Source: Utricularia gibba
Lineage: Eukaryota > Plantae > Magnoliophyta
Length of the DNA: 64,000 nucleotides
Direction of reading: 5' to 3'
NCBI GenBank assembly: GCA_002189035.1
Contig: NEEC01000030.1
Span: 62,001 to 126,000 of the forward strand
The notes below the pieces were generated by a model that saw only the letters and a program-made list of their open reading frames with translations, did no database searches and was not told the origin of the DNA. Every line of letters starts with the position of its first letter. The stretch's first letter is position 1. Both the position numbers and the translations under genes were made by a program. Of the stretch, positions 17,153 to 59,731 are shown in pieces.

Positions 17153-18355
17153 ATGGTGAAGTATGATTCATCTGGTGGTGATGATATGGACCGAAAATCT
17201 CAAAGAAATTGGAAGCCAAATCGTGATGTAAGATATGATTATAGACCAAGGGGTAGACACACACGTGAATACAAGGAATTTGATAACATCAAGATGAAAA
17301 TCCCTTCTTTTCAAGGGAAAAACGATCCAAATGCCTACTTGGAATGGGAGACTCGTGTGGAGCATGTGTTTGATTGTCACAACTATTCTGAAGTCAAGAA
17401 GATCAAGCTTGCTGTTATTGAGTTTACAGATTATGCCATAACTTGGTGGGATAAAGTAGTATTCAACAGAAGACGAAATGATGAAGAACCAATTCGCACT
17501 TGGGCTGAAATGAAGAGGATCATGAGAAAAAGGTTCATTACCAGCCACTACCAAAGAGATCAACACCAAAACTTGCAGAAGCTCACCCAAGGGAGCAAAA
17601 CCGTGGAAGAATATTGGCAAGAAATAGAGGTGTTAATGATTCGAGCCAATATAATAGAGAATAGGGAAGCTACAATGGCAAGATTCCTCTATGGTTTAAA
17701 CAAGAAAATCTCTCAAGTGGTCGAGCTGCAACACTATGTGGAGATTGAAGACATGTTGCATGTTGCAATAAAGATTGAGAAGCAACTAAAGTGTAAGGGA
17801 CAACATAGAGACCATCCAAAACCTACTACCTCGTGGAATGTTGCTGGAAGTAAGGAGAAGAAACCCAATTATCCTTCATTTGGGAAATCAACCAAGTTTG
17901 GACCGATGAAAGAGGGCACTGCAGATATCCGAAATCAGGAAAGAGAATTTAAGTCCTCTGGACAAACACGAAATATAAAGTGTTTCAAATGTCTTGGCCA
18001 TGGTCATATTGCTTCAGAATGCCCAAGCAAGAGGACCATGATTCTAAGGGACTCTGGAGATGTTGAATCTGAAATTGATTGTGAAAGTAGAAGTGAAGTA
18101 CAGGAGATAGATGATGGGGAACAACAACCTGTCATTGGTGAATGTTTGGTAACAAGAAGGACTTTAACCATGGATGCTAAGCCAATGGAGGAGCAACGAA
18201 AAAACTTATTCCATACACGTTGCTTTGTGAATGGGAAAGTTTGTAGCCTAATAATTGGAGGCAGTTGCACAAACGTTGCTAGTACTCTCATGGTGGATAA
18301 ACTCCATCTTCCTACTCTTAAACATCTAAAAAAGAGAGTGAAAAGAAAGACGTGA
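17153..18355 (+). pseudogene. CRM-A gag, zinc knuckle and truncated aspartic protease
   Basis: KMKIPSFQGKNDPNAYLEWE, CFKCLGHGHIASEC, CSLIIGGSCTN (catalytic D lost). An internal deletion follows. Confidence 0.88.
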
Positions 18356-18678
18356 ATGATGCAGTTGTGAGAAAAAAAGAAGTGGAATGCCTTGTTGCAA
18401 GAATGAGTGATGTGAAAAGAGTGTTACATGCCAGAAATCCCTTTCTTTTGCTCTTGTTTAAAGAGCCTTTGTCACACAACTCTAACCCACAATTGGATCT
18501 TCCTACTTGCATTAAACTTGTTCTCTAGGAATTCAATAATGTTTTTCCTGATGAATTGCCTGGATTACAACCATACCGAGGAATAGAATATCAAATTGAT
18601 TTCGTTCCTGGTGCTCAAATCCCAAACTGAGTTGCGTATAGAGCCAACCCTGAAGAAACCAAAGAAATCCAACGCCAA

Positions 18679-20946
18679 GTGGAAGAACTCATGGCTAAGG
18701 GGTTGGTGAGGGAGAGTGTTAGTCCATGCTTAGTTCCAGTTTTATTGGTGCCAAAACATAATGGAACATGGAGAATGTGCACTGATTGTAGAGCCATCAA
18801 CCAAATAACGGTTAAGTACAGTCAACCTATACCTAGGCTTGATGATATGTTAGATAAATTACATGTATCATACATTTTCTCTAAGATTGATTTCCGTAGT
18901 GGATATCATCAAATTAGGATGAGAAAGGGGGATGAATGGAAGGGTGCTTTCAAAACTAAATTTGGTTTATATGAATGGTTAGTTATGCCTTTTAGATTGA
19001 CTAATGCACCTAGTACTTTCATGAGATTGATGAATCATTTATTGCATCCCTTTCTTGGTAGATTTGTTGTTATTTACTTTGATGATATTCTTGTGTATAG
19101 TAAGACACTAGATGAACATACATGTCTATTACGTGAGGTGTTGGTTGTTTTGAGAAAAGAGTGTTTGTATGCTAATATCAAAAAGTGCGACTTTTGCACA
19201 AACAAAATCTCCTTTCTTGGCTATATTGTAAGTGATGTAGGTATTTTAGTAGATGAAGAAAAGGTGAAAGCAATTAGAGAATGGCCATCTCCTACCACAA
19301 TTGGAGAAGTGTGCAGTTTCCATGGATTGGCTACCTTCTACCGTCATTTTGTAAAGGATTTCATCACAATTGCTGCACCATTGAACGAGGTTATGAAGAA
19401 AAATGTGCATTTTTGGTGGGGAGAATCACAAGAACATGCTTTCAAGACACTTAAGGATAAGTTTAGCTCAGCTCCTTTACTTGCATTACCTGATTTCTCT
19501 AACACGTTTGAAATTGAATGTGATGCTTCTGGAGTTGGAATAGGTGCTGCTCTCATGCAAGGAGGTCGACCTATTGCCTATTTCAGTGAAAAATTGGGTG
19601 GAGCTACACTAAATTACCCAACTTATGATAAGGAGTTGTACTCATTGGTTAGAGCACTTGAAACTTGGAAACATTATCTTTGGTACAAAGAGTTTGTTAT
19701 CCATACAGATCACGAAAGTTTAAAGCATGTCAAGAGTCAAAAAAATCTCAATATAAGACACGCAAAATGGGTGGAGTTCATTGATACCTTTCCTTATGTT
19801 ATCAAATATAAGAAAGGTAAGGAGAACATTGTTGCAGATACATTGTCATGAAGGTACACACTTTTAGCCACTCTTGATGCTCAAATTCTTGGATTGTCAA
19901 CAATAAAAGAATGTTACAGTGTTGATCATGATTTTAAAAATATTTATCTTTCATGTGAACATAAACCTGTTGAAAACTTTCATAGGCAAGATGATTTTCT
20001 TTTCAAAAAGAACAGATTATGTATTCCTCAATGTTCAATTCGTGTGTTTTTAGTGAAAGAAGCTCATGGTGGTGGTCTAATGGGGCATTTTGGGGTCACC
20101 AAGACATTGGACATGCTTCAATAACACTTCTATTGGCCACACATGAGAAAAGATGTGGAAAGAATTTGTGGAAGATGTTTGGTGTGCAAGAAAGCAAAAT
20201 CAAAATCAATTTCTCAAGGATTGTACACTCCTCTTCCTACTCCTCTTTACCCTTGGATTGACCTTTCTATGGATTTTGTTTTAGGATTACCAAGGACTCA
20301 AAAGGGAAAGGATTCAATATTTGTGGTGGTGGACAGATTCTCCAAGATGGCACATTTCATTCTTTGTAGCAAGACTGATGATGCTTCGCATGTTGCCGAT
20401 TTATTCTTCAGGGAGATTGTTAGGCTTCATGGTTTGCTACCCTACTTCGTACCATCATCAAAAATAACATTAAAACATGGGAAGATTGCTTATCTAATGT
20501 TGAGTTTGCATACAATAGAGCAGTACTTTCTTCTACTCATTGTTCTCCTTTTGAAATTGTGTATGGTTTTAATCCTCGTACACCTATAGACTTGTTGCCC
20601 TTGCCATCTGATGAATTTTGTAGTTTTGATGGTGCTAAGAGAGCAGATGTCACCAGAACACTACATGAGAAGGTTCGAAATCAATTGGAAGCCAAAAACA
20701 TGGAGTATGCATTTAAAGCAACTAAATATAGGGAAAAAGTTACTCTACAACCATGAGATTGGGTTTGGGTACATTTTCGAAAGGAAAGATTTCCAAGCAA
20801 GAGGCATTCAAAGCTTTCACCTAGAGGAGATGGACCCGTTCAAGTCATTGAGAAAATCAATGATAATGCTTATAAGATTGATCTTCCAGAGGAGTTTTCG
20901 GTGCACTCCACGTTCAATATTGGTGACTTGGGTCCTTGTGATGTAG
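18679..20946 (+). pseudogene. CRM-A reverse transcriptase/RNase H (18679-19851) and fragmented integrase
   Basis: [67 protein letters not shown]. Stops and frameshifts occur in the integrase. Confidence 0.9.
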
Positions 20947-34711: not shown

Positions 34712-37700
34712 TAATGTATTTGGTAGTAATGGGCATTCTCTAATCAAGATAATGCACTTTGAGAATGTTGAATTCCATGCCCAATATCTCATAGCTTGGT
34801 TGATTGGCCCATATGCTCCTAAGCACTTCTTGATTCCATCTTGCTCTTGATCTAGTGATTGACTCAACTGAAATTAATGGAGCATTATTGATCTTGTGTA
34901 CTTTATCTTCATTGATATAATCTATAGCATCCATGATCTCATCATTCCCCCTTTCTTTTAGCAGATTCATCCTTGAATCATCACCATCTACATCACAAGG
35001 ACCCAAGTCACCAATATTGAACGTGGAGTGCACCGAAAACTCCTCTGGAAGATCAATCTTATAAGCATTATCATTGATTTTCTCAATGACTTGAACGGGT
35101 CCATCTCCTCTAGGTGAAAGCTTTGAATGCCTCTTGCTTGGAAATCTTTCCTTTCGAAAATGTACCCAAACCCAATCTCATGGTTGTAGAGTAACTTTTT
35201 CCCTATATTTAGTTGCTTTAAATGCATACTCCATGTTTTTGGCTTCCAATTGATTTCGAACCTTCTCATGTAGTGTTCTGGTGACATCTACTCTCTTAGC
35301 ACCATCAAAACTACAAAATTCATCAGATGGCAAGGGCAACAAGTCTATAGGTGTACGAGGATTAAAACCATACACAATTTCAAAAGGAGAACAATGAGTA
35401 GAAGAAAGTACTGCTCTATTGTATGCAAACTCAACATTAGATAAGCAATCTTCCCATGTTTTAATGTTATTTTTGATGATGGTACGAAGTAGGGTAGCAA
35501 ACCATGAAGCCTAACAATCTCCCTGAAGAATAAATCGGCAACATGCGAAGCATCATCAGTCTTGCTACAAAGAATGAAATGTGCCATCTTGGAGAATCTG
35601 TCCACCACCACAAATATTGAATCCTTTCCCTTTTGAGTCCTTGGTAATCCTAAAACAAAATCCATAGAAAGGTCAATCCAAGGGTAAAGAGGAGTAGGAA
35701 GAGGAGTGTACAATCCTTGAGAAATTGATTTTGATTTTGCTTTCTTGCACACCAAACATCTTCCACAAATTCTTTCCACATCTTTTCTCATGTGTGGCCA
35801 ATAGAAGTGTTATTGAAGCATGTCCAATGTCTTGGTGACCCCAAAATGCCCCATTAGACCACCACCATGAGCTTCTTTCACTAAAAACACACGAATTGAA
35901 CATTGAGGAATACATAATCTGTTCTTTTTGAAAAGAAAATCATCTTGCCTATGAAAGTTTTCAACAGGTTTATGTTCACATGAAAGATAAATATTTTTAA
36001 AATCATGATCAACACTGTAACATTCTTTTATTGTTGACAATCCAAGAATTTGAGCATCAAGAGTGGCTAAAAGTGTGTACCTTCATGACAATGTATCTGC
36101 AACAATGTTCTCCTTACCTTTCTTATATTTGATAACATAAGGAAAGGTATCAATGAACTCCACCCATTTTGCGTGTCTTATATTGAGATTTTTTTGACTC
36201 TTGACATGCTTTAAACTTTCGTGATCTGTATGGATAACAAACTCTTTGTACCAAAGATAATGTTTCCAAGTTTCAAGTGCTCTAACCAATGAGTACAACT
36301 CCTTATCATAAGTTGGGTAATTTAGTGTAGCTCCACCCAATTTTTCACTGAAATAGGCAATAGGTCGACCTCCTTGCATGAGAGCAGCACCTATTCCAAC
36401 TCCAGAAGCATCACATTCAATTTCAAACGTGTTAGAGAAATCAGGTAATGCAAGTAAAGGAGCTGAGCTAAACTTATCCTTAAGTGTCTTGAAAGCATGT
36501 TCTTGTGATTCTCCCCACCAAAAATGCACATTTTTCTTCATAACCTCGTTCAATGGTGCAGCAATTGTGATGAAATCCTTTACAAAATGACGGTAGAAGG
36601 TAGCCAATCCATGGAAACTGCACACTTCTCCAATTGTGGTAGGAGATGGCCATTCTCTAATTGCTTTCACCTTTTCTTCATCTACTAAAATACCTACATC
36701 ACTTACAATATAGCCAAGAAAGGAGATTTTGTTTGTGCAAAAGTCGCACTTTTTGATATTAGCATACAAACACTCTTTTCTCAAAACAACCAACACCTCA
36801 CGTAATAGACATGTATGTTCATCTAGTGTCTTACTATACACAAGAATATCATCAAAGTAAATAACAACAAATCTACCAAGAAAGGGATGCAATAAATGAT
36901 TCATCAATCTCATGAAAGTACTAGGTGCATTAGTCAATCTAAAAGGCATAACTAACCATTCATATAAACCAAATTTAGTTTTGAAAGCACCCTTCCATTC
37001 ATCCCCCTTTCTCATCCTAATTTGATGATATCCACTACGGAAATCAATCTTAGAGAAAATGTATGATACATGTAATTTATCTAACATATCATCAAGCCTA
37101 GGTATAGGTTGACTGTACTTAACCGTTATTTGGTTGATGGCTCTACAATCAGTGCACATTCTCCATGTTCCATTATGTTTTGGCACCAATAAAACTGGAA
37201 CTAAGCATGGACTAACACTCTCCCTCACCAACCCCTTAGCCATGAGTTCTTCCACTTGGCGTTGGATTTCTTTGGTTTCTTCAGGGTTGGCTCTATACGC
37301 AACTCAGTTTGGGATTTGAGCACCAGGAACGAAATCAATTTGATATTCTATTCCTCGGTATGGTTGTAATCCAGGCAATTCATCAGGAAAAACATTATTG
37401 AATTCCTAGAGAACAAGTTTAATGCAAGTAGGAAGATCCAATTGTGGGTTAGAGTTGTGTGACAAAGGCTCTTTAAACAAGAGCAAAAGAAAGGGATTTC
37501 TGGCATGTAACACTCTTTTCACATCACTCATTCTTGCAACAAGGCATTCCACTTCTTTTTTTCTCACAACTGCATCATTCACGTCTTTCTTTTCACTCTC
37601 TTTTTTAGATGTTTAAGAGTAGGAAGATGGAGTTTATCCACCATGAGAGTACTAGCAACGTTTGTGCAACTGCCTCCAATTATTAGGCTACAAACTTTCC

Positions 37701-40099
37701 CATTCACAAAGCAACGTGTATGGAATAAGTTTTTTCGTTGCTCCTCCATTGGCTTAGCATCCATGGTTAAAGTCCTTCTTGTTACCAAACATTCACCAAT
37801 GACAGGTTGTTGTTCCCCATCATCTATCTCCTGTACTTCACTTCTACTTTCACAATCAATTTCAGATTCAACATCTCCAGAGTCCCTTAGAATCATGGTC
37901 CTCTTGCTTGGGCATTCTGAAGCAATATGACCATGGCCAAGACATTTGAAACACTTTATATTTCGTGTTTGTCCAGAGGACTTAAATTCTCTTTCCTGAT
38001 TTCGGATATCTGCAGTGCCCTCTTTCATCGGTCCAAACTTGGTTGATTTCCCAAATGAAGGATAATTGGGTTTCTTCTCCTTACTTCCAGCAACATTCCA
38101 CGAGGTAGTAGGTTTTGGATGGTCTCTATGTTGTCCCTTACACTTTAGTTGCTTCTCAATCTTTATTGCAACATGCAACATGTCTTCAATCTCCACATAG
38201 TGTTGCAGCTCGACCACTTGAGAGATTTTCTTGTTTAAACCATAGAGGAATCTTGCCATTGTAGCTTCCCTATTCTCTATTATATTGGCTCGAATCATTA
38301 ACACCTCTATTTCTTGCCAATATTCTTCCACGGTTTTGCTCCCTTGGGTGAGCTTCTGCAAGTTTTGGTGTTGATCTCTTTGGTAGTGGCTGGTAATGAA
38401 CCTTTTTCTCATGATCCTCTTCATTTCAGCCCAAGTGCGAATTGGTTCTTCATCATTTCGTCTTCTGTTGAATACTACTTTATCCCACCAAGTTATGGCA
38501 TAATCTGTAAACTCAATAACAGCAAGCTTGATCTTCTTGACTTCAGAATAGTTGTGACAATCAAACACATGCTCCACACGAGTCTCCCATTCCAAGTAGG
38601 CATTTGGATCGTTTTTCCCTTGAAAAGAAGGGATTTTCATCTTGATGTTATCAAATTCCTTGTATTCACGTGTGTGTCTACCCCTTGGTCTATAATCATA
38701 TCTTACATCACGATTTGGCTTCCAATTTCTTTGAGATTTTCGGTCCATATCATCACCACCAGATGAATCATACTTCACCATGCCTTGCCTATTCAGCCTC
38801 AGATTTCGAATCTTTTTCTAGTTGAGAATTCTTTCGGCTATGGTGTGTTGGAACTCTTATTCTTCCATGGGAAACACTGTCCTCTTCTATGCATCTTTGC
38901 AATCTCTTGAACTCACTTTGCATTGCATTAAGTACAAAACCAACATCCATAACATTTTATTCTTCTGCAGGGTTATTAGAGCTCGACATCCTACTACGAG
39001 AGAAAAGTGTAGACAAAAAGAAGGAAAGATAATAACAACAGAAAGATAGAAGGAAAACAAGAAAGAGAGAATTTCCAAACCTCAAGTCCTGTTGAACTTT
39101 AAGACTCAGTAAACCTTAAATGATCAATCTAAGTGTGGTTCAAAGAGATCATAGTGGCTACGGTAATGAGTGGAAAGATAGACTTGGTGATGGTAATAGT
39201 AATAATGGTTAAGTAAAAGTAGGAATGGAAAGATAGAGTGTAACTTTTTGTGATTAACACCAAAAGAGGTAGGTACACAATTGAAAAGAGTTAAAATGGA
39301 ATAGAAGTATGACAATAGACAAAGTTGTACAATATTGACTTTTCTTTTGTTTGGTAAAGAAAAGATTCAATGGATTCAAATGACTAACTTCTTTTTTTGA
39401 CTTTTCTTGTGTGTGAAAAGTTGAAAATTCAACTGCTAACCTTCTTTCTCCCTTCAACACGTTTTTTTTTTCTTTTTGCAGCAATCCAGAAAAAAAGGGT
39501 GGAAGAAACAAAGATAAGAAACCCCCCTTGGTTCTTCTTTTCAGAGGCAGAGATGAGCAAAAGACAAGATAACCAAATCAAGATAGATCTGGACTAGTTT
39601 CTGGTTTTTTTTTTTTTTTTCTGAGAACGAAACCAAAACAAGATAAATAGGAGATGAAGAAGAGAAAGATTGGCTTTGATACCACCTGATACGACCCTCC
39701 AATCAAGAAGTTATTGGCAAACCATATCTTGGTTGAAAAGAAGCAATTCCTCAAGAAATAAGAAGTTGGCCCTCAAAGATTGAAAGATCTTTGCAACTCA
39801 AACTTAAGAGTAAGGACTTCTTAAATAGATGAAGGTTGGGCTTTATTTGAGGAAAAGTAGTAATAATAATGTATTTGGTAATAATGGGCCTTCTCTAATC
39901 AAGTTGATGCACTTTAAGAATGTTGAATTCCATGCCCAACACCACATAGCTTGGTTGATTGGCCCATAAGCTCTTAAGCACTTCTTGATTCCTTCTTGCT
40001 CTTGATCTAGTGATTGGCCCAACTGAAATCAATGGAGGATTATTGATCTTGTGTCATTTATCTTAATTGGGATAATCTATAGCATGCATGATCTCATCA
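34712..40099 (-). mobile_element. CRM family A element, mirror copy of 15835-21222
   Basis: ORFs 37579-38781 and 36083-37255 translate identically to 17153-18355 and 18679-19851. One SNP seen (RADV vs RVDV, 20644/35290). Confidence 0.92.
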
Positions 40100-49191: not shown

Positions 49192-49597
49192 TAATGAAAA
49201 ACTTCGATTGGGGTGAGATAGATAGTCCCTGCCTTGGACCGGTGAATGGTTTTTTTTTTCGTAATGTACTAGATGCATCGGAAGGGTTCAGCATGGGTCG
49301 AACGTTCGATTAGAGTCATACTAGTTAAAAGCGAGCCAGTTAACTTGTCAGGTCCAATGTGTCACGAGTTCACTCTTGACTTTAAACATTTGATGATACA
49401 AGATAAAAATCATTCATTATCTTGAATCATGAAGATTAAGATATTATAATCAGAATAATTATAAATGAAAATTTATACTTAGCTAAATAGAATCACACTA
49501 GTGATATAATATGAAAAAAGATAGAAGAAAAAATTGTTATTAGCACTTTCATTAATAGTTCCACAAGCATATAATTCAAAAACAATGAAATTTACTC

Positions 49598-50124
49598 TGT
49601 TATGGGTGAAATCGGTATCCGGTGAGAGGCCGATTTTAGGTGATAGGCGCGGTCGAGAATGCCACACTTAGTCACCTTCTTCACGGTTGGTACGATTAAA
49701 ATAAGAGTGAGCAAGGATTTTTTACGTGGAAACTGCCGGAGAGCGGAAAAACTACGGAGCTGCCGGAACTCGCCGGAAAAGAGTTTCACTAGACGGAGGT
49801 CGCGAAAAGGAGAATACAACTTGAAGAAATCTTTTGAGTCCAACCCCCTTTCATCATAATTCCTCCTATTTATAGGAGAGCTCACTCTGACCGAATTCTG
49901 GTGTCTGCAAATATCGGTTGCTTTCTGCTCCTGCTATACGATCTCGCTTTTCAGATATCGGCCGCCTGTCATGCTGTAATTCGGCCGCTTTTCAGATTGT
50001 GTCATATGGCCATACCTGTCAGATTTCTGACAGATGTCGATCTGTCGTCTAGCGTTATCCCCTCGGGATCTCTTTTGGCAGCCTTCTAGGAACCGATTAT
50101 ATCCGACCGGTTTATCCCCTATCA
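49598..50124 (-). repeat. Retand 3' LTR (527 bp)
   Basis: About 19 substitutions and 2 small indels versus the 5' LTR by manual count (~3.7%). TATAAATA on the minus strand at 49867-49874. Confidence 0.95.
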
Positions 50125-50345
50125 TTCAGCCCCTCTGATTTGTCGATATTGGCCCTTCCGGGATAAATCGGGGAATTAGAATCACCACAATGCCGACTTC
50201 CAAGGTGCCACCTTGTTCGCATGAGCCACAAACCGCTTTGTTCCGATATCTCTGCCACGCGTCAGCTCATAAACACACCACGTTTTTTCCCGCCCACCCG
50301 GGGTACCTGAAATGTCGTGTCACTTCGTCTCCCGACTTCTTCCAT

Positions 50346-50352
50346 TATAAAT
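50346..50352 (+). promoter_or_regulatory. Candidate TATA box of the antisense gene
   Basis: TATAAAT followed by a pyrimidine-rich leader, a candidate 5'UTR intron at 50473-50603, and aaaATGG at 50633. Confidence 0.5.
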
Positions 50353-50632
50353 ATCCGCACCCCTTGTCATTTCTCCCCTTTGCTTTCTTCGTTCGCTCAT
50401 GAGATTCCAGTGCCCTTTGAACTCCGCTGTGCTTGCCGCCGTGTTATCCACCGGAGATTATAGATTTCTCAGGTATCCGCTCCTTCTCTGTGTCTTTTTG
50501 CATCCCTACAGTTGCTTAACTCTCCTTTAGATCTTCGGGAACTTTGACGGGTAGTTACTGCCCTCCTGAGTCTTTTCCCTTTCTGACTTCCGCCTCGTCC
50601 TAGGGTTTGGGGCTTCTTTTGATTTTTCGAAA

Positions 50633-52885
50633 ATGGGTAGAAGATCTAGTGAACTTGACATCCCATCTCTGCGCATTCGGTATTCAATTCCTGATGAGTA
50701 TCAGATTTCTCCTGCTCGGGATGCCGAAATCCCTTGGGGGATTGGCGAGGCCCCTCTACCTCCATTCAGTCTTCCGATTCCATTAGCCTATTTCGAGAGT
50801 GGTTTACGCTTCCCACTCCATCCTTTAATAGTCCGCTTTCTCTCCACCTTTGCGATTCCACTTTACTGCCTCGCCCCGAATTCTATATTCTGCTTCACCA
50901 CCTTCCTTTTCTATTCGGCCAGTATGGACCCGGTTATGACTCTGGTAGACTTCCTCCATCTCTTCAAGATTGCCGTGCGTAAAGCGAAGTCCCCGATGGA
51001 TGGACGATCTCATTTTCAATTCCGCCGGTTTGAAGATAACCCCAACTTTGTCGTTAAAGCCCCCGATACCCATCATGATTGGTGGTCCTCTTTTGTTTGG
51101 GTAGCTCCCCCTTTGGGTTTTCGGTGGAACTTCCCATTCGATCCTCCAACTCCTTTCAGGGTTAAAATCTTCGGTGCGTATCAGTCTTCTTCCGAATCTC
51201 GTGAAGTTCTTTACGAGAGGCTCAGTCGAGGCTGGTTCGGTACGAGTCTCGTGCCTTGATGTTCTTGGGTGTGTCGCTGAAAAGATCAGGTATTATCGGT
51301 CGCTCTCGAGACCCCACTGGCCCGATATTATTTCTTTCGGTGGCACCGATTCGAGAAACCTTCATCTTAGCCCATCTCCATCCCTTCCTCTTGTTTCTGC
51401 CTCATCTCCGATTCCCCACCTGTTCAAACCGGGGCCCACAAGAAAAAGAAGAGGGTTAAGGCGCTTGCGCATAAACCCTCAAAGAGGCAAAGAGGTAGTT
51501 GGGTTCAGCTTCCCCGAGTCTTAGAATCGGCATTATGCCTTATTGCTTTTCCTACTTTCGTCTTCAGTTGAAGAGATGGCTCGAAGAAGCTCCCTGGAAG
51601 ATTCGGTAATGGCGCGGTTCTCCGCCGAGATGCAGAGGATGCAGGAACCCGAGATGCCCTCCCCTGCACAGGTTTATCTTATTCCTGATGGCCCGTTGCT
51701 AAGAGTATTTGGTTCTAACTTTTTAACTTTTTTTCCAGGCCGATTCACCCTCAGCTCACTCAGATGTTGCTGGTCACCTCCTAGAGGGTCAAGTGGTCGA
51801 GGTTCCCGGAACTCGGGAACCAACTCCTCCTCCGTCTGGAAAAGGAAAAGAAAGGCTCCCGCCTGCACCGATATCCGATAATGATCCGGCTCCCGGCATT
51901 GGGCGGATCTCGGCTGGGGCTTCTACCTCGGTCCCTCCTAGTGACATAGGGGGAATTTCATCCCCTCCGACCCGGGTGAGGGAGGATCCTGCCTTTCCCC
52001 CTTCTTCCTTCCCCTTAGGGCTACAAAAAGCCTTAAAAGAGGCCACTCCCAACCTTGCGGGAATTCAACCAGAGGTTGTACTCAAAGGGATTTGGCAGGT
52101 ATTCCCTCTTCCTTCTTCTTTTCTTCTTCTCTCTCTCGGGTAAGCAAATATATCTGATTCCTCGCTCGCCGATTTCATCATAGGCTTTGACCTTTGGATG
52201 GGGGATGGCCAAAGAGATGGGATCCCATTATGAGGAAGTCTCTCGGCTTCAAGCTCAAATCACGGCTCAGGATGCCAAGATATAGTCGTTAGGGGAAGAA
52301 GGGAGCGCATTGAGGTGCATACTCGGGAAGCGTACATGCCGAGAAGAGGAGTTGCAGACCCTGGTTAATGAAATGGGGAAGGCAATTGATGACGCCAACT
52401 CCGAGAAAGAAGGCTTCAAAGTGCAACTCGAGGAGACTGAGGCGGAGCTTAAACAAACCAAGGATCGCGTATCGGCCCTGGAAGCAGAGCTACACAACCA
52501 GGAAGCATCTCGCGGAAGACTTTTGGAGGACTTCGTGAACTCGGCCTGCTTTTTCGAATTATCGGATGTCTATGCCGGAGACTTAATCGGCCTCATTCTA
52601 TTCCACCAAAGTCGATAGTTCAGTCGGGAGTTCGGGCTTTCAATTTTGGATTCGTGGTTCGATAGGATAAATCCCTTGACGAAGGATGAGAACATGCTAG
52701 ACGTTATCGCAGATACGTTCCAGGCCCCGAAAATTGGGTTTGGAGCTGATCGGGAGCGGCTGATGGCACTGATTCGGGCGAGGATAGGGCGAGAGAATGA
52801 TGCCAAACTGAGAGCGAGGATGAAACGTCATACCGGTTCCTCTGCCAATCCTCCTGTTAATCCCCCATCTCCTCCTGCACTTTAA
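50633..52885 (+). pseudogene. Antisense extra gene of the Retand element: Transposase_28 (PF04195)-like N-terminus, Pro/Ser-rich linker, coiled-coil C-terminus; intron-containing
   Basis: YFESGLRFPLHPLIVRFL...LAPNS fits the putative gypsy-type transposase pattern. Introns 51672-51738 and 52099-52183 join the ORF pieces in frame. Lesions: a frameshift near 51240 and in-frame TAGs near 51522, 52283 and 52616. Confidence 0.75.
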
Positions 52886-53691
52886 TGACTTTTTTGACTT
52901 AGTGTATTTTCCCCCTACTGTGGGGTTTCTTGAACATTTTTGATATTCCGGTTCGAGATTTCCCTCTAATTTACACTCTTTTTTGCGCATCACTTTTGCC
53001 TCTAATGATATCATATTTCGGGGGAAGCCCCGAGTCGGTTTGTTATGTCTATTACGTACTTAGACTTGGAAGGTTTGCCTATGCTTTTGTGACCCGAGGG
53101 AGGGTATCTCTTCACCAACCCTTTGGTTTGGGCTTTTTGATTCCAGTTTGCCTTAGTATTTCCTCATGTGGGCTGAACCGCCGCTAGGGAAGTAGGCCGG
53201 AACCCCTCATGGGTTGAGCGACCTCCCCAATTCGAAAGGGCCCTCTTCTGGCCGAATCCCATTGTTTTGAACATGAGTAGATTTGCTTTGGGTGCTCCTG
53301 TCGTCTCGAGATTTTGACAGTAAGGTCAATACTTAAGGGCTTTTCAGGGCTTACGCATGCGGTTTACGGGAACCGGTGACCGAATTGTACCAGGGCTTAT
53401 TCTTGCTACTGATGCCTGGGTTGATGGGTCACATATATATATCGGGGGAGACCCCGAGTCGATTTGCTGTATCCCGTGGAGGACGCCGATTTAGAAGATT
53501 CGCCTGGGCTTATGTTACTTGGCCAGAGCTTTAGATCTTTGATGGTCTGCTTGGGCTTACGTGATTCGGCCAGGGATTGTGGTTTTGTTTACCCATCTCC
53601 ATTTCGGAGGAATTCATAGGCGCGTGAGCATTTTGGGGAAGAGAATGCCGAATCTTGCGTAATCCTGTGACAGAGATTGATATTGAGTCGG

Positions 53692-56600
53692 TTAGGCGTA
53701 GAACTTCCTTAAATGCGATGCATTCCACGACCTTGGGAGTTCCACGCCACCTAATTGTTCCAGGTGATATGCTCCTTTTTCGATCACCCTTGAAATCCGA
53801 TAAGGGCCTTCCCAATTGCGGTCTAATTTCCCGACGTGTCTCTGTGCTTGGATGCTTCGGAGCACCAAATCTCCTTCGGAGAACTCCCTTGGGGATACCG
53901 AGTTGTTGTAACTCTTCTCCGTTCTTCTCTGATAAGCCCCTAGTTGGCTATAGATGCTTTGTCGCTTCTCTTCCAACAGCTCCAATTCCAGTTTTCAGAG
54001 GTCAGTATTTTCGTCTTCATTATAATGCTCCACCCGGTAGCTCTTCAGGGTCAGTTCGATGGGGCATATGGCTTCTGAACCATAAACCAATAAGAATGGT
54101 GGTTCGAGGGGTAGTGCGATATGACCACAGTACCTCGTCCAAGCGATCTGCCCATGACCCCCCAAAATCTTCGAGCTTAGTCTTCATACCTAGTCGGAGC
54201 GTTCGGTTCGTTAACTCTATGAGGCCATTGCTTTGCGGGTGATATACCGAGGTGAAGTTGTACTTGACCAAATATTTATCCAGGAATGCGTCCATTTTTC
54301 CTCTGGCGAATTGGGTTCCGTTATCAGTCACTAGCTCCTGAGGAATTCCAAACTGAATGAAGATGTTTTTCCATAGTAATCAGATACCGATATCTTTGCC
54401 ACGGCTTCAGCCTCTACCCACTTGGAGAAATATTCGACATCCACGATGACGAATTTCCTTTGACCCGAGGTGTGGGGGAACGGCCCCATAATGTCCACCC
54501 CCATCGGTCGAAGGGGCAGGAGAGTGGGAGAGAGGTCAGGTTACTTACTGGTTTCCTCGGTATATTTGCATGGTATTGACATACTTTGCACTTCTTCACC
54601 ATTTCGGTAATATCCTGCTTCATAGTTGGCCAGTAATACCCGGTTCTCAGAACTTTCCTGCATAGGGATTGTATTCCAATATGGCTGCCGCATTCCCCCT
54701 CATGTAGATCGGTTATGAGTTCTTGAGAATGCTTTGCCCCGATGCACCTCAATAGGGGTCCATCTAGGGATTTGCGATAGAGAATTCCATTCACTAATGT
54801 ATACCTCTTCACTCTAGTCTCCAACTATCGGGCTTTTGACTTATCAGGTGGGGTTTTCCCGTTTTGTAAATACCGGATGTAGGGCGTCGTCCAGTCATCA
54901 AGGGGACTCAGCTGTGAACAGATATCGCTTTCTGGTTGCTGGGTAATATGATTCATGACTCGTAAGCTTACCGAGGGTTGGTTCCGCAGCCGAATAGTCA
55001 CACTTCCTTCCCTTAACTCGTGAAACCCTGCTGCGAATCGGGCGAGGCTATCCATGGACCCGTTTTTCTAACGAGCTACGTGCGACAGGGTGAATTCCTT
55101 GAAGGTTTTAGCCAATTCCCTCACCTGAACACGGTACAGAGCCATGAGGGAGTCATGGGTTTCGTATTCTTTCGAAAACTGCCCTTGCACAAGTCGCGAA
55201 TCGGTGTAAACGTCGAGTTCTGCCACTCCCAACTCCTTGGCAATTTTCATTCCCTCAATCAGGGCTTCATATTCGGCCACATTGTTGGAGGCAGGGAATA
55301 AGAATTTCACCATAATATAAATATGCTCTCCTTCTTGGGTCCTAATGTCTATTCCTCCTCCGGTGCCGTTGTATGTTGAGCCATCCACGTACATAGCCCA
55401 TTGGTCATTGGCTTCCAAGAAACGGTCTATAGGCCTGGTCATTTCGACCACAAAATCAGCAAGAGGTTGGGCCTTGATTGCTGTTCTCGACTTAAACTCA
55501 ATATCCATTGTACTTAATTCAACTGCCCATTTGGCAACCCTTCCGGAAATCTCTGGACGAGACAGGATGTTCTTCAGAGGCTGATTGGTGAATACCACAA
55601 TGTGCCGATCTTGGAAATATGACCTCAATTTGGTGGCCGCCATCTTCAGAGCCAAGATGAATTTTTCTGTCACCGTATAGCGGGTTTCGGCCAGTAACAA
55701 AACTTTGCTCACATAATACACCGACAAGTGATTATCTGCCGAGATGGTTGTCAAGACTGCGCTGACTGCAATGGGCGATATAGACAGATATAGTCCTAAG
55801 GGCTCCCCTGCCTTCAGAGCCACAAGAAGCGGGGGTGATGAGAGATATTCCTTGAGTTTCTCAAAAGCAATCCGGCAATCCTCGTTCCATTCTAAAACGC
55901 TTCCCTTTCGCAAGACCTTGAAGAAGGATGTCGACTTATCGACCGACCGAGATATGAAATGGCTGAGGGCAGCCAATTTACCCGTGAGGCTTTGGTACTC
56001 CTTGATTGTCCTCGGGGGTTGCATTCCGCATATTGCCTTAATCTTCTCGGGGTCAGCCTCGATTCCTCTCTCCGATACGTAATACCCAAGGAATTTTCCA
56101 CTTTGCACTCCGAAGCAACATTTCAATGGGTTGAGCTTTAACCCGAATGACCGACATAAAGAGAAACACAAATCCAAATACGCTAAATGGTCTTCTTCAT
56201 TCATAGATTTCACGATCATATCGTCCACATACACCTCCATTGAGGTACCGATTTCAGAAGAGAATATTTTATTTACCAACCTCTGGTAAGTCGCACCAGC
56301 ATTCTTCAATCCGAAAGGCATTGCCACGTAGCAGTAAACCCCATCCTTAGTGTAGAAGGTGGTTTTCGGTTGGTCTTTCTCTGCAACGAAAATTTGATGA
56401 TACCCCGAATAGGCATCCATGGTGCTCAGAAATTGGGATCCGGCAATGGCGTCCACTAGCTTGTCGATCTTTGGCAAAGGATAAGGGTCCCTTTCACAGC
56501 AGGCGTTGAGGTCGGTGAAGTCAATGCACACCCTCCATTTTCCTCCGGGTTTTGGGACGACGACCGGGTTGGCTACTCATTCGGAGTACTGGATCTCCTT

Positions 56601-59117
56601 CACATAACCAGCTTCCAAAAGCTCTCTTGTTTTTTCTTTGATGATTCGGCACTTTTCCTCTGAGAAATGTCGTTGCTTCTGCCGAACCGGTTTTGCCCCC
56701 GGGTAGGTATCAATGTGATGTTCGGTGACGGATCGATCAATGCCTACAAAATCCGCAGCAGTCCAAGCAAAAATATCGGTGTTCTTCATCAAAAGTTCAA
56801 CTAACCTTTTTTCGAATCCAGCGTCTAGATTGGCACCGATGCGGGTGGCTTTCTGCGCATCTTTTGGTATTAGTTGCACCGACTTGTACCTACTGGTTCC
56901 ATTGCTTGTCCAGGGGGTTCCCGGGGTTCCTTTTCTACCATCATCACTCTCGAGTTTTTCGCGCAGGGGTCCTGACAGGAAGATACATAACAAGACCGGG
57001 CGGTTGGTTGGTCGATACCCATTGTGCAAATGCCCTTCGATGTTGGGAATTTGATTTTCAAATGCACAGTGGAGGGTAGCATACCGAATTGGTTGTTGCC
57101 GGGTCGCCCGAGGATGATGTTGTATGAGATCTCTGAATCCAGGATTAAGAATTTTAACCTCTCGGTTTGGCTCTGCCCTGCCGCTCCGAATGTTACGGGC
57201 AGGGTTATTTTCCTGATAGTTTGCACGGCCCGCTGGTCGAATGCGTACAACTCCATGCGCACATGGCGAATATTTCCCTCGATAGATGACGCTAGTAACT
57301 CGGCCACTTCCTTCTTCATGATGTTGCACGAGGATCCTTGATCGATAAGAATCCTCCTTACCTTGGTGCTCCCACATATTCCTGACACCACCAAAGGCTC
57401 ATCTCTCATGGCTGGGCCAGCCGGGACGTCTTTGTCGGAGAAGCTGATCTCTTCCTTTTCCCAAGCAGCTTTCTCAGTCGGACCATTTCCGATTTCGAAA
57501 ACTTCTCCTCTTCTAGCTTCATCCAAATATCTCTTCCGTTCCTTTCCGGACACATCCATCTCGGTTCCTCCGGATATCATATGGATTTCCCGAATATAGG
57601 GGGGACTACCCTGCATTTGATGGGCACTCCGTGAACTTTCCGGTATGTCTTGTCCTCCTTCAAGTTTCGGTTCCCTATTGGCTCCCGAGTTCGCCATCCC
57701 CGGTTTCGGAGGGAATTTCGGATATCGGTTCCCTTCGTTCCCCGTTCGCTCGTTAGGTCCTCTTTTCCGGTCCGTCATTGATGCGGGGTTCCGCATCGCA
57801 TTGTTCATCCCCCACCAGCATGATATTGCTCGATCATCCTCTTCATCAGTCGGCAATGGGCAGTATCATGCCCGGTGGTCTTGTGTATTTCGCAGTAGGC
57901 ATCTGTTCTGGTTGGTTCCACCTGATATACTTCACGGCGCTTATTCGGCCAAGGCCCCCGGTTAAGTTGGGTCTCCTGCTGTGGGACTGGACGAATCTCC
58001 ACGTGGCTTTTCATCTCGGCCCTGAGGTCGTCGTCCACTCGGATGTACTTCATGATTTTCCTTAGCAATTCTCCGAGATTCTTTGGTGGGGATTTCGATA
58101 GACTCTGTCCCAGTTTCGACGTTCCTAAGGCCCGCTTCATTATTTCAACCCTTTCTTTTAAATCCAATTGGACATCCTACACCAAGCAGTTGAATTGATC
58201 GATGAATCTTCGCAAGCTCTCTTTTCGGTGATCGTACCGAATAGAGTATAGTGATGCCTTTGAAGGTGGAGCTTCAATGTTAACAGCGTATCGGGTAGTG
58301 AAGAGCAGTACTAATTCCCGATAAGATGCCACGCTGTATGGTTCTAACTGTTTAAACCAAGTCTTCGCTCCTTTCTAGAGCGAGCAAGCAAACAGCTTAC
58401 ACTTCATGGCCTCTGAATGTCGAACCGTGGACATCCTCATATCGAAGTCGGTTACATGCGATATGGGGTCCCCTTTTCCGTCATACGTGGGTAATCCGTC
58501 TGGGACTCTGAATCCTCTCTCGGGCTCTTCTCCGACTAAATCATCCGAGAAAGGGTCAAAACACAGCGTTGTGGTTCCAACTACTCCCTCAACTCCACTC
58601 TTCAAGGCCAAAGCAATATCGGCGAAAACATCTCCTCTCCCAGTGGATACGTTCTGATCGAAAACGTCCCTGAAGCCTCTATCCTCTCTTCTCCCTGCCA
58701 ACATCCGCTTGTCGATAAATCTTTTCCTCTCGCGGATCTGGTCTAACTCTCTTTTCAACTCTTCTTCTCTTTCTTCCAAGATTTCTTCTAACTCGCGGAT
58801 CATGTTTTCCCTATAAGCTCCTGGCTCATACTCAACTTGGTTGCGCCTCTTTCTCCGCAGCATCTCCTCTTCGGTTTCGGATTCAGTCTCCGTATCTGGG
58901 GGTACTCCAGAATAAGAGGTTGCTTCGTCGTTCGTGGTGCGGTTTCGGGTGTTCTCTCCTGGGTGTTGGAGTTGAGACCTGAAGGTGCCCAGAGGTCGGT
59001 AAGGATTTCCATTAGCAGGGCCTTCAGTTGCTCCCTGCTAGTGATCATAAGGCCGGGGTCTCGCGCGTCGGCACTTCCGTCATGAGCCGGGTCGGTGGTT
59101 GTGCTATTTTCCGCCAT
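53692..59117 (-). pseudogene. Retand gag-pol (frameshifted): gag, PR, RT, RH, aRH, integrase
   Basis: LPTYDGKGDPISH, ILIDQGSSCNIM, YVDDMIVKS, MYVDGS..NNVAEYEALIEG, LHEGECGSH, TDNGTQF, HPQSNGLIE, KLDRNWEGPY. Confidence 0.93.
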
Positions 59118-59173
59118 GACTCGTGATTAGTGAGTGGCTCCTGTGGGTTTCTCAAATGGGACTGTGGAATGTA

Positions 59174-59191
59174 GCTCCACGGTGGGCGCCA
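59174..59191 (-). promoter_or_regulatory. Primer binding site, tRNA-Lys type
   Basis: TGGCGCCCACCGTGGAGC, 1 mismatch to the complement of the plant tRNA-Lys(CUU) 3' end, 4 nt from the LTR. Confidence 0.82.
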
Positions 59192-59195
59192 AATA

Positions 59196-59711
59196 TGTTA
59201 TGGGTGAAATCGGTATCCGGTGAGAGGCCGATTTTAGGTGATAGGTGCGGTCGGGAATGCCACACTCAGTCACCTTCTACACGCTTGGTACGATTAAAAT
59301 AAGAGTAAGCAATGATTTTTTACGTGGAAACCGCCAGAGAGCGGAAAAACCACGGAGCTCGCCGGAAAAGAGTTTCACTAGATGGAGGTCGCGAAAAGGA
59401 GAATACAACTTGAGGCAATCTTTTGAGTCCAACCCCCTTATCATAATTCCTCCTATTTATAGGAGAGCTCACTCTGACCGAATTCTGGTGTCTGCAAATA
59501 TCGGTTGCTTTCTGCTCCTGCCATACGATCTCGCTTTTCAGATATCGGCCGCTTGTCATGCCGTAATTTGGCCGCTTTTCAGACTGTGTCATATGGCCAT
59601 ACCTGTCAGATTTCTGACAGATGTCGATCTGTCGTCTGGCGTTATCCCCTCGGGATCTCTTTTGGCAGCCTTCTAGGAACCGATTATATCCGACCGGTTT
59701 ATCCCCTATCA
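59196..59711 (-). repeat. Retand 5' LTR (516 bp)
   Basis: Direct repeat of 49598-50124, adjacent to the PBS. Confidence 0.95.
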
Positions 59712-59731
59712 TACTCAAAGGATAATATATA

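Follow-up and report, generated by a model that had tools for sequence, protein, structure and literature searches.

Retrotransposons of the Retand type carry open reading frames (ORFs) on the strand opposite to gag-pol, and the locus studied here raises the question of whether these are separate genes or the exons of a single spliced gene. It lies at 50340-52885 of a 64,000-nucleotide stretch of Utricularia gibba DNA (the window, to which all positions refer unless a locus is named), inside a minus-strand Tat/Retand element. Retand antisense ORFs have been described as separate ORFs of at least 600 bp, introns never being mentioned (Vicient 2025, PMC11963269; Vicient & Casacuberta 2020, PMC7264820), and the 2020 review calls for a search for spliced antisense transcripts. 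An earlier interpretation of this DNA, the sequence-only reading, had proposed a spliced gene with a TATA box, a leader intron and two phase-0 introns. Our results suggest, with a probability of roughly 0.7, that 50340-52885 is a decayed copy of the Retand antisense accessory gene for a TRP28 (PF04195) protein, and that this gene truly contains introns and has a promoter of its own, as opposed to being a set of separate ORFs. The antisense TRP28 gene of Retand is already known, the spliced reading being the new part; we infer transcription, splicing and protein function in this family from sequence.

The landmarks of the proposed gene were found where they had been placed: TATAAAT at 50346-50352, aaaATGG at 50633, CAG/GT donors at 50473, 51672 and 52099, AG acceptors at 50603, 51738 and 52183, and the junction peptides PSPAQ/ADSPS and KGIWQ/ALTFG (Table 1). 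Each of the segments 51672-51738 and 52099-52183 spans a change of the open frame. Possible introns were scored heuristically, on an approximate plant splice-site matrix, on their T and GC content and on the presence of a CTRAY branch point at 12-50 nt from the acceptor. The two segments were the sole ones passing all filters on both strands of the window (128 kb), and relaxed thresholds admitted 2, then 11, further segments elsewhere in the window. Within 50200-53000, position 51738 was the top acceptor and 51672 and 52099 were the donors ranked second and third. Both segments fell in the lowest 0.3-5% of gene windows for GC and the highest 0.2-1% for T, and this U-rich composition contrasts with their GC-rich flanks. 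The features of a U2-type intron (GT...AG, pyrimidine tract, CTRAY, U-rich interior and a length of at least about 60 nt) were present in both, and were weak for 50473-50603 and 51495-51567.

The claim of two phase-0 introns stands as far as the sites, the pyrimidine tracts and the intron-like quality are concerned; the argument that both splices land in frame with the next ORF does not carry it. When GT...AG segments of 60-250 nt were allowed, more than 1.5 million stop-free chains were available downstream of 51161 by chance, one of which, with three introns, removes genuine domain sequence; landing in frame is weak evidence because such chains are so abundant. The quality of the two predicted introns, unlike their landing in frame, is beyond what chance would give. 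The frame switches might instead reflect ordinary decay of a once continuous ORF, the splice-like sites being coincidental. Decay finds support in the state of the copy (LTRs, long terminal repeats, diverged by 3.7% with 2 indels; at least two in-frame stops; an unphaseable stretch), in the same abundance of stop-free chains, and in the continuous ORFs of some relatives (657 codons at the related locus L076; 516 aa on a 2.9-kb contig for the predicted protein P0021). However, it offers no reason for the exact coincidence of the two frame switches with the only intron-like segments of high quality in 128 kb, or for the U-rich composition of these segments between GC-rich flanks. For 52099-52183 it needs an indel plus a stop, since each of the two flanking frames meets stops within the segment and the flanks cannot be joined by a simple indel. 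The nearest relatives, L003 and L004, also have strong intron candidates before the coiled-coil exon. We consider decay an unlikely explanation of the switches.

Relatives were collected with the pol ORF as an anchor, which gave one locus in a viral collection and 80 metagenome loci with 41-51% pol identity. TRP28 was antisense to pol in 48 of these 81 loci, mostly 3.2-4.3 kb downstream of the pol match, a layout like that of the window. The offset differed in six (L003, L004, L022, L039, L040 and L045): TRP28 lay unusually far downstream of the pol match in L045 and upstream of it in the other five. The TRP28 gene in these six loci may thus belong to an adjacent copy. At L003:1-3579 and L004:953-5102, which have the top pol identity (50-51%), TRP28 is encoded on the opposite strand, some 4 kb upstream of the pol match, a layout that suggests tandem or adjacent element copies. 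These two loci bear two to three intron candidates each, including a strong one just before the coiled-coil exon, at a position that corresponds to 52099-52183 here.

The evidence that GT and AG are conserved comes from related families and not from copies of this family, and most of it from 34 loci that form one family with a mean nucleotide identity of about 80%. In its best-kept copies there are two long antisense ORFs of about 339 and 332 codons, some 50 nt apart, which lie in different genomic frames in some copies and in the same frame in others. In a junction alignment, a predicted intron in phase 1 separates the TRP28 exon from the one for the coiled coil. Its donor, ...TATG/GTTAGTTGTTCTGAT (G/GTTAGTTG), was invariant in 34/34 copies, and its acceptor, TTTTGCAG/AT, kept AG in 32 of the 34, together with a TTAAC-type branch site and a T tract. 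The intron length varied from 68 to 73 nt across the family; copies with lengths of 69, 71 and 72 nt had both exons intact (338-365 and 323-332 codons), always in phase 1. The first ORF of L009 ends at a TAG directly after the donor, so intact copies of this family are not open through the intron.

L009:6657-16109 and L010:6580-16227 are complete Retand elements on metagenome contigs with both antisense exons intact. Their LTRs are identical over the 300 nt reported, which makes them young, and the elements look recently active. In seven intact diverged copies of the 34-copy family dN/dS (the ratio of non-synonymous to synonymous divergence) was 0.09 for exon 1 and 0.11 for exon 2 at a dS of 0.5-0.6, values that show strong purifying selection on the exons. 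The intron itself (L009:14431-14501, minus strand, which is positions 1496-1566 of the reverse-complemented extract L009:11935-15997, and 33 other loci) differs by only 9%, against the exon dS of 0.5-0.6, and its first 15-22 nt are nearly invariant. Because the intron is better conserved than synonymous sites, this suggests extra constraint on it, on one strand or the other.

Could the antisense ORFs nevertheless be unspliced, each translated alone or the first only, with the T-rich segments serving as intercistronic spacers? The literature draws them as separate (Retand-2 ORF3/ORF4; the 2025 survey), and in the 34-copy family the first ORF has its stop just after the donor and the second an ATG in a strong context, ATCATGGC, 5 nt past the acceptor. 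Spacers, however, need no invariant GT, AG, polypyrimidine tract or TTAAC-type branch site, nor the phase match that all examined families show even though the lengths range over 65-77 nt. Both parts occur together in single predicted proteins from other plants. The middle exon of the window (51739-52098) lacks any ATG ahead of codon 19, the start there being only a GTG. Moreover, internal cistrons are rarely translated in plants. Separate translation of the ORFs therefore seems to us improbable.

The spliced reading also receives support from five further families, which had an intron candidate of 65-77 nt at the same TRP28/coiled-coil junction. Phase 1 was computed for L076, L051 and L057; L045 and L047 were in phase 1 only with a donor 4 nt upstream of the first-scored one, as worked out by hand. 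At L076 (extract 613-2583) the candidate intron is open in frame, giving the 657-codon ORF. The Ensete gene model P0019 seems, by eye, to include the intron-encoded residues GTIILLYFSLSNCSLTY at this junction. Gene callers thus treat the TRP28/coiled-coil intron inconsistently.

Several observations weigh against a spliced gene at this locus. The second exon of the 34-copy family is continuous, without counterparts of 51672-51738 and 52099-52183. The filter thresholds that singled out these two segments were chosen after the candidates were known, and the matrix is approximate. Frame 0 is open as far as 51878, through 51672-51738, and with 2 LTR indels in about 1 kb a simple frameshift could explain the switch at this segment. 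A second copy of this family was not found in the window, in the protein collections or in viral and metagenome contigs searched with the TRP28 ORF. Finally, the downstream exons had no significant sequence homology to the downstream exons of the relatives.

The first ORF matched PF04195 (Transposase_28) at E = 3.7e-5 and 24.3 bits, just below the cut-off of 26.2, over profile positions 5-67 of 69. A phmmer search of 1.84 billion representative proteins found 27 relatives (E down to 2.7e-11, identity at most 34%), all confined to 50633-51223, with Urochloa, Sesamum, Ensete, Aristida, Sorghum and Daucus among the named sources; a word-based protein search with the same ORF found nothing within its length window. 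All ten phmmer relatives that were scanned exceeded the PF04195 threshold (27-81 bits) and are true members of the family, and the PF04195-conserved residues G57, L58, R59, P61, P82 and N83 are kept in this copy, in agreement with the PF04195-like domain named by the sequence-only reading. An AlphaFold model of the domain (window 50633-51256; 25 sequences) had a mean predicted local distance difference test score (pLDDT) of 77 and a predicted template modelling score (pTM) of 0.73; searches of the PDB with this model found no structural neighbour (Foldseek, E > 4; VIA-align, Z no higher than 2.4).

The piece 52286-52615 matched only generic coiled-coil families in Pfam-type and atlas searches. 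These matches, and the same layout in predicted proteins of other plants, agree with the Pro/Ser linker and coiled coil that had been proposed. In Sesamum (675 aa), Aristida (569 aa) and Sorghum (516 aa), TRP28 is combined in one predicted protein with a basic stretch, a linker of low complexity and a coiled coil, and P0004, P0009 and P0021 are among the single predicted proteins with this layout. Automatic gene models of other plants thus already unite both parts, and the joining of TRP28 and coiled coil in single predicted proteins favours one protein here. These results also bear on whether the antisense strand gives a non-coding or regulatory transcript only (for example a source of double-stranded RNA), its ORFs having no protein function. 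Antisense transcription as a regulator was raised in the 2020 review (PMC7264820). Set against it are the dN/dS of 0.09-0.11 in diverged copies of the related family, the fairly confident fold of the TRP28 domain, and the presence of this domain in 97% of the Retand clusters surveyed (PMC11963269). The low dN/dS in the relatives makes a purely non-coding role so improbable that we set it aside.

A promoter of its own is suggested by a module shared with relatives. The order in the window is GTCGTGTCAC, TATAAATA, TGTCATTTC, and in relatives it is CCACGTGTCAC, TATATATA or TATAAATA, TGTCATTTT. Each of 23 related loci had a single copy of the CGTGTCAC...TATA module, in all cases antisense to pol; where its place was compared with TRP28 coordinates (e.g. 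in L009), it was upstream of the TRP28 ORF. The pattern CGTGTCAC-N8-38-TATAWAWA had one match in the window, at the TATA box that had been proposed, where 0 were expected, a count that is partly circular since the pattern was derived from the same comparison. The TATA promoter is thus borne out by a module common to related loci. The leader intron fared less well: 50473-50603 had an acceptor score of -1.9 and an exon-like GC of 0.49, and it passed only the loosest filter, a setting that finds 29 candidate pairs in 128 kb. The spacing from TATA to ATG is about 80 nt in the relatives examined (L009 and L037), leaving no room for a leader intron, versus 287 nt in the window. This spacing and an upstream ATG at 50399 make a leader intron conceivable here.

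Between the TRP28 exon and the first of the two good introns, the stretch 51240-51567 can be read in several ways. The sequence-only reading had passed by one frameshift into frame 0 and through the TAG at 51522, with TRKRRGLRR as a basic stretch resembling a nuclear localisation signal (NLS). The basic stretch and the TAG are present, and this model is one among several equally costly readings. The basic stretch occurs in two frames, and the "NLS-like" sequence may be part of an intron or may be coding, either in frame 0 or in that of the ATG. The candidate 73-nt intron 51495-51567 had been overlooked; its donor is the fourth best in 50200-53000. Reading it requires the upstream ATG frame to be kept, through two compensating indels or three nonsense changes. 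A lesion-free reading runs from a phase-1 donor (51240) directly to the acceptor 51567; it is cheap by chance, with six in-phase GTs available and 328 nt that are exon-like (GC 0.50, T 0.29). No single good intron linking the ATG frame to frame 0 was found in 51240-51567. A third intron may end at 51567. By-eye matches to relatives (an exon-1 tail "RAL...G/GT" and an exon-2 head "MAR...MAR") failed hidden Markov model tests and were rejected, and the similarity of the relatives' intron to the window at the DNA level was not significant.

In-frame TAGs were located at 51522 (frame 0), 52283 and 52616, before the terminal TAA at 52883. Those at 52283 and 52616 are the firm lesions of this gene copy, and they bear out the earlier statement that it is disabled.

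The host element (49598-59711, minus strand) is a complete but decayed Tat/Retand Ty3/gypsy retrotransposon flanked on both sides by the 5-bp target site duplication (TSD) GAGTA. Divergence between its LTRs amounts to 19 of 517 aligned sites (3.7%; 15 transitions) and 2 indels, so the copy is old. The Kimura two-parameter distance (K2P) of the LTR pair is 0.038, which the rice substitution rate in common use puts at about 1.5 million years. The gag-pol region is broken into several ORFs, the largest pol ORF (487 aa) containing RVT_1, RT_RNaseH(_2) and RVT_3/RNase_H domains. An archaeal-type RNase H (aRH) domain between RNase H and integrase marks the angiosperm Tat subclades Ogre and Retand (Neumann 2019, PMC6317226), and the host element has this domain. 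Retand rather than Ogre is indicated by the reverse-orientation extra gene between pol and the 3' LTR and by the length of that region, about 3.6 kb (published Retand range, 2,933-6,566 bp); the internal region of 9.1 kb and the LTRs of about 520 bp are also inside published Retand ranges. No tandem-repeat array, typical of many Retand elements, was found in the host copy. The assignment to the Tat/Retand type is thus supported by domain order, antisense extra gene and pol-3' LTR length, and the earlier description of a Retand-type element with a gene antisense between pol and the 3' LTR agrees with the order of reverse transcriptase (RT), RNase H and aRH, the LTRs and the TSD.

Table 1. Features of the host element and its antisense gene, in window positions.
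Feature	Position	Strand	Remarks
3' LTR (TG...CA)	49598-50124	-	TSD GAGTA at 49593-49597
Antisense promoter module CGTGTCAC-N22-TATAAATA	50316-50353	+	about 190-230 nt inside the 3' LTR boundary
Initiator-like TGTCATTTC	50366-50374	+	after the TATAAATA box
Possible intron in the 5' untranslated region, 131 nt	50473-50603	+	CAG/GTATCC...CTGAC...CCTAG/G; weak
First coding exon	50633-51239	+	202 open codons from aaaATGG; holds the TRP28 (PF04195) domain
Unphased stretch	51240-51567	+	ATG-frame stops 51257, 51278, 51368; frames 0 and 1 open
Candidate intron, 73 nt	51495-51567	+	GAG/GTAGTT...TCTTCAG/TT; encloses TAG 51522; weak
Short exon (..EEMARRSSLEDSVMARFSAEMQRMQEPEMPSPAQ)	51568-51671	+	open in frame 0
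Predicted intron, 67 nt, phase 0	51672-51738	+	CAG/GTTTAT...CTAAC...TTTTTTTCCAG/G; GC 0.34, T 0.48
Exon, 120 open codons	51739-52098	+	Pro/Ser/Gly-rich linker
Predicted intron, 85 nt, phase 0	52099-52183	+	CAG/GTATTC...CTGAT...CATCATAG/G; GC 0.42, T 0.42
Last exon	52184-52885	+	coiled coil and C-terminal region; TAGs 52283-52285, 52616-52618; stop TAA 52883-52885
Integrase C-terminus remnant	53695-53985	-	downstream of the RNase H domains
pol fragment	55071-56531	-	order RT, RNase H, second archaeal-type RNase H
Primer-binding-site-like TGGCGCCCACCGTGG	59177-59191		4 nt internal to the 5' LTR; putative
5' LTR (TG...CA)	59196-59711	-	TSD GAGTA at 59712-59716

Elsewhere in the window, two pairs of equally long ORFs (400 and 390 codons) were found at 17153-19851 (+) and 36083-38781 (-), inverted and about 16 kb apart. 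Together with the repeat families D1, D2 and D7, these pairs indicate a large inverted duplication of other elements.

Taken as a whole, the interpretation that we started from is kept for the Retand type, the own promoter, the short canonical introns and the dead copy, and weakened or left unsettled for the leader intron, the frame argument and the model of 51240-51567; its label "host-style gene" is a description only, which carries no weight for a host origin. In the mechanism that we propose, RNA polymerase II (Pol II) would start at an internal promoter (CGTGTCAC box, TATAAATA box and initiator) about 200 nt inside the 3' LTR and read toward pol. The pre-mRNA would lose at least two short U-rich introns, 51672-51738 and 52099-52183, and a further intron probably ends at 51567. 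A single protein of about 600-700 residues would result, in which a disordered Pro/Ser linker joins the TRP28 domain at the N-terminus to the coiled coil at the C-terminus. Given the way retrotransposition works, the introns would survive it because the reverse-transcribed RNA is the other strand, where they read CT...AC and would not be recognised. The protein may act as an accessory or regulatory factor for the element, probably a nuclear one, which this copy would no longer be able to produce. It is a doubtful but conceivable extension that the introns are part of an expression strategy, in which splicing licenses export and translation of the antisense mRNA and shields it from the RNA silencing of intronless transposon transcripts, and in which the TRP28/coiled-coil intron may double as a cis-acting signal for the element, on either of the two strands.

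An analogy is offered by the HBZ gene of human T-cell leukaemia virus type 1 (HTLV-1), whose mRNA is spliced and whose introns are invisible on the genomic RNA strand. Like the gene proposed here, HBZ lies antisense at a retroelement's 3' end, is a Pol II gene and encodes a nuclear protein with a coiled coil (a leucine zipper). It belongs, however, to an animal retrovirus, has its promoter in the 3' LTR itself and shares no sequence or domain kinship, so that the likeness is an analogy only (HBZ is cited as antisense and nuclear in PMC11963269). The closest known systems are the Retand antisense ORFs, among them Silene Retand-2 ORF3/ORF4 (PMC11963269, PMC7264820), which have the same antisense orientation, the same position between pol and the 3' LTR, PF04195 and a coiled-coil ("Smc"-like) part. 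They are described as separate, whereas here, and more firmly in the related families, the ORFs appear to behave as exons of one gene. In maize Grande, likewise a Tat-clade element, the long 3' internal region contains gene23 (Gomez-Orte et al. 2013, as summarised in PMC7264820), which is also an antisense accessory gene transcribed from its own promoter, with a protein reported to be nuclear; that review makes no mention of splicing, and the two are likened by description only.

Two further systems involve introns in retroelements. The Ogre intron (Steinbauerova et al. 2008, cited in PMC6317226) is another case of a Tat-clade element using host splicing, but that intron separates gag-pro from RT on the sense strand, and only part of the transcripts lose it; the introns proposed here are antisense and, unlike that of Ogre, would never meet the genomic RNA. 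In his3-AI-type reporters (PMC12786077) intron removal likewise depends on orientation to the reverse-transcribed transcript. Those cassettes are engineered, with an intron that is sense to the element and lost on transposition, whereas here the introns would be antisense and kept.

As this copy is dead, its worth is that of an example and not of an active gene. Retand elements, whose hallmark is the antisense TRP28 gene, account for a large share of many plant genomes, and the dN/dS of about 0.1 in the exons of relatives suggests that the protein matters to the element. The shared promoter module may offer a handle on the timing of its expression. If the gene is spliced, ORF-based surveys would fragment the protein and miss its TRP28-linker-coiled coil architecture, and the correct coding sequence would become usable for expression, localisation and interaction tests. 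It would also be a natural case of an intron shielded from loss by its antisense position to the RNA that is reverse transcribed.

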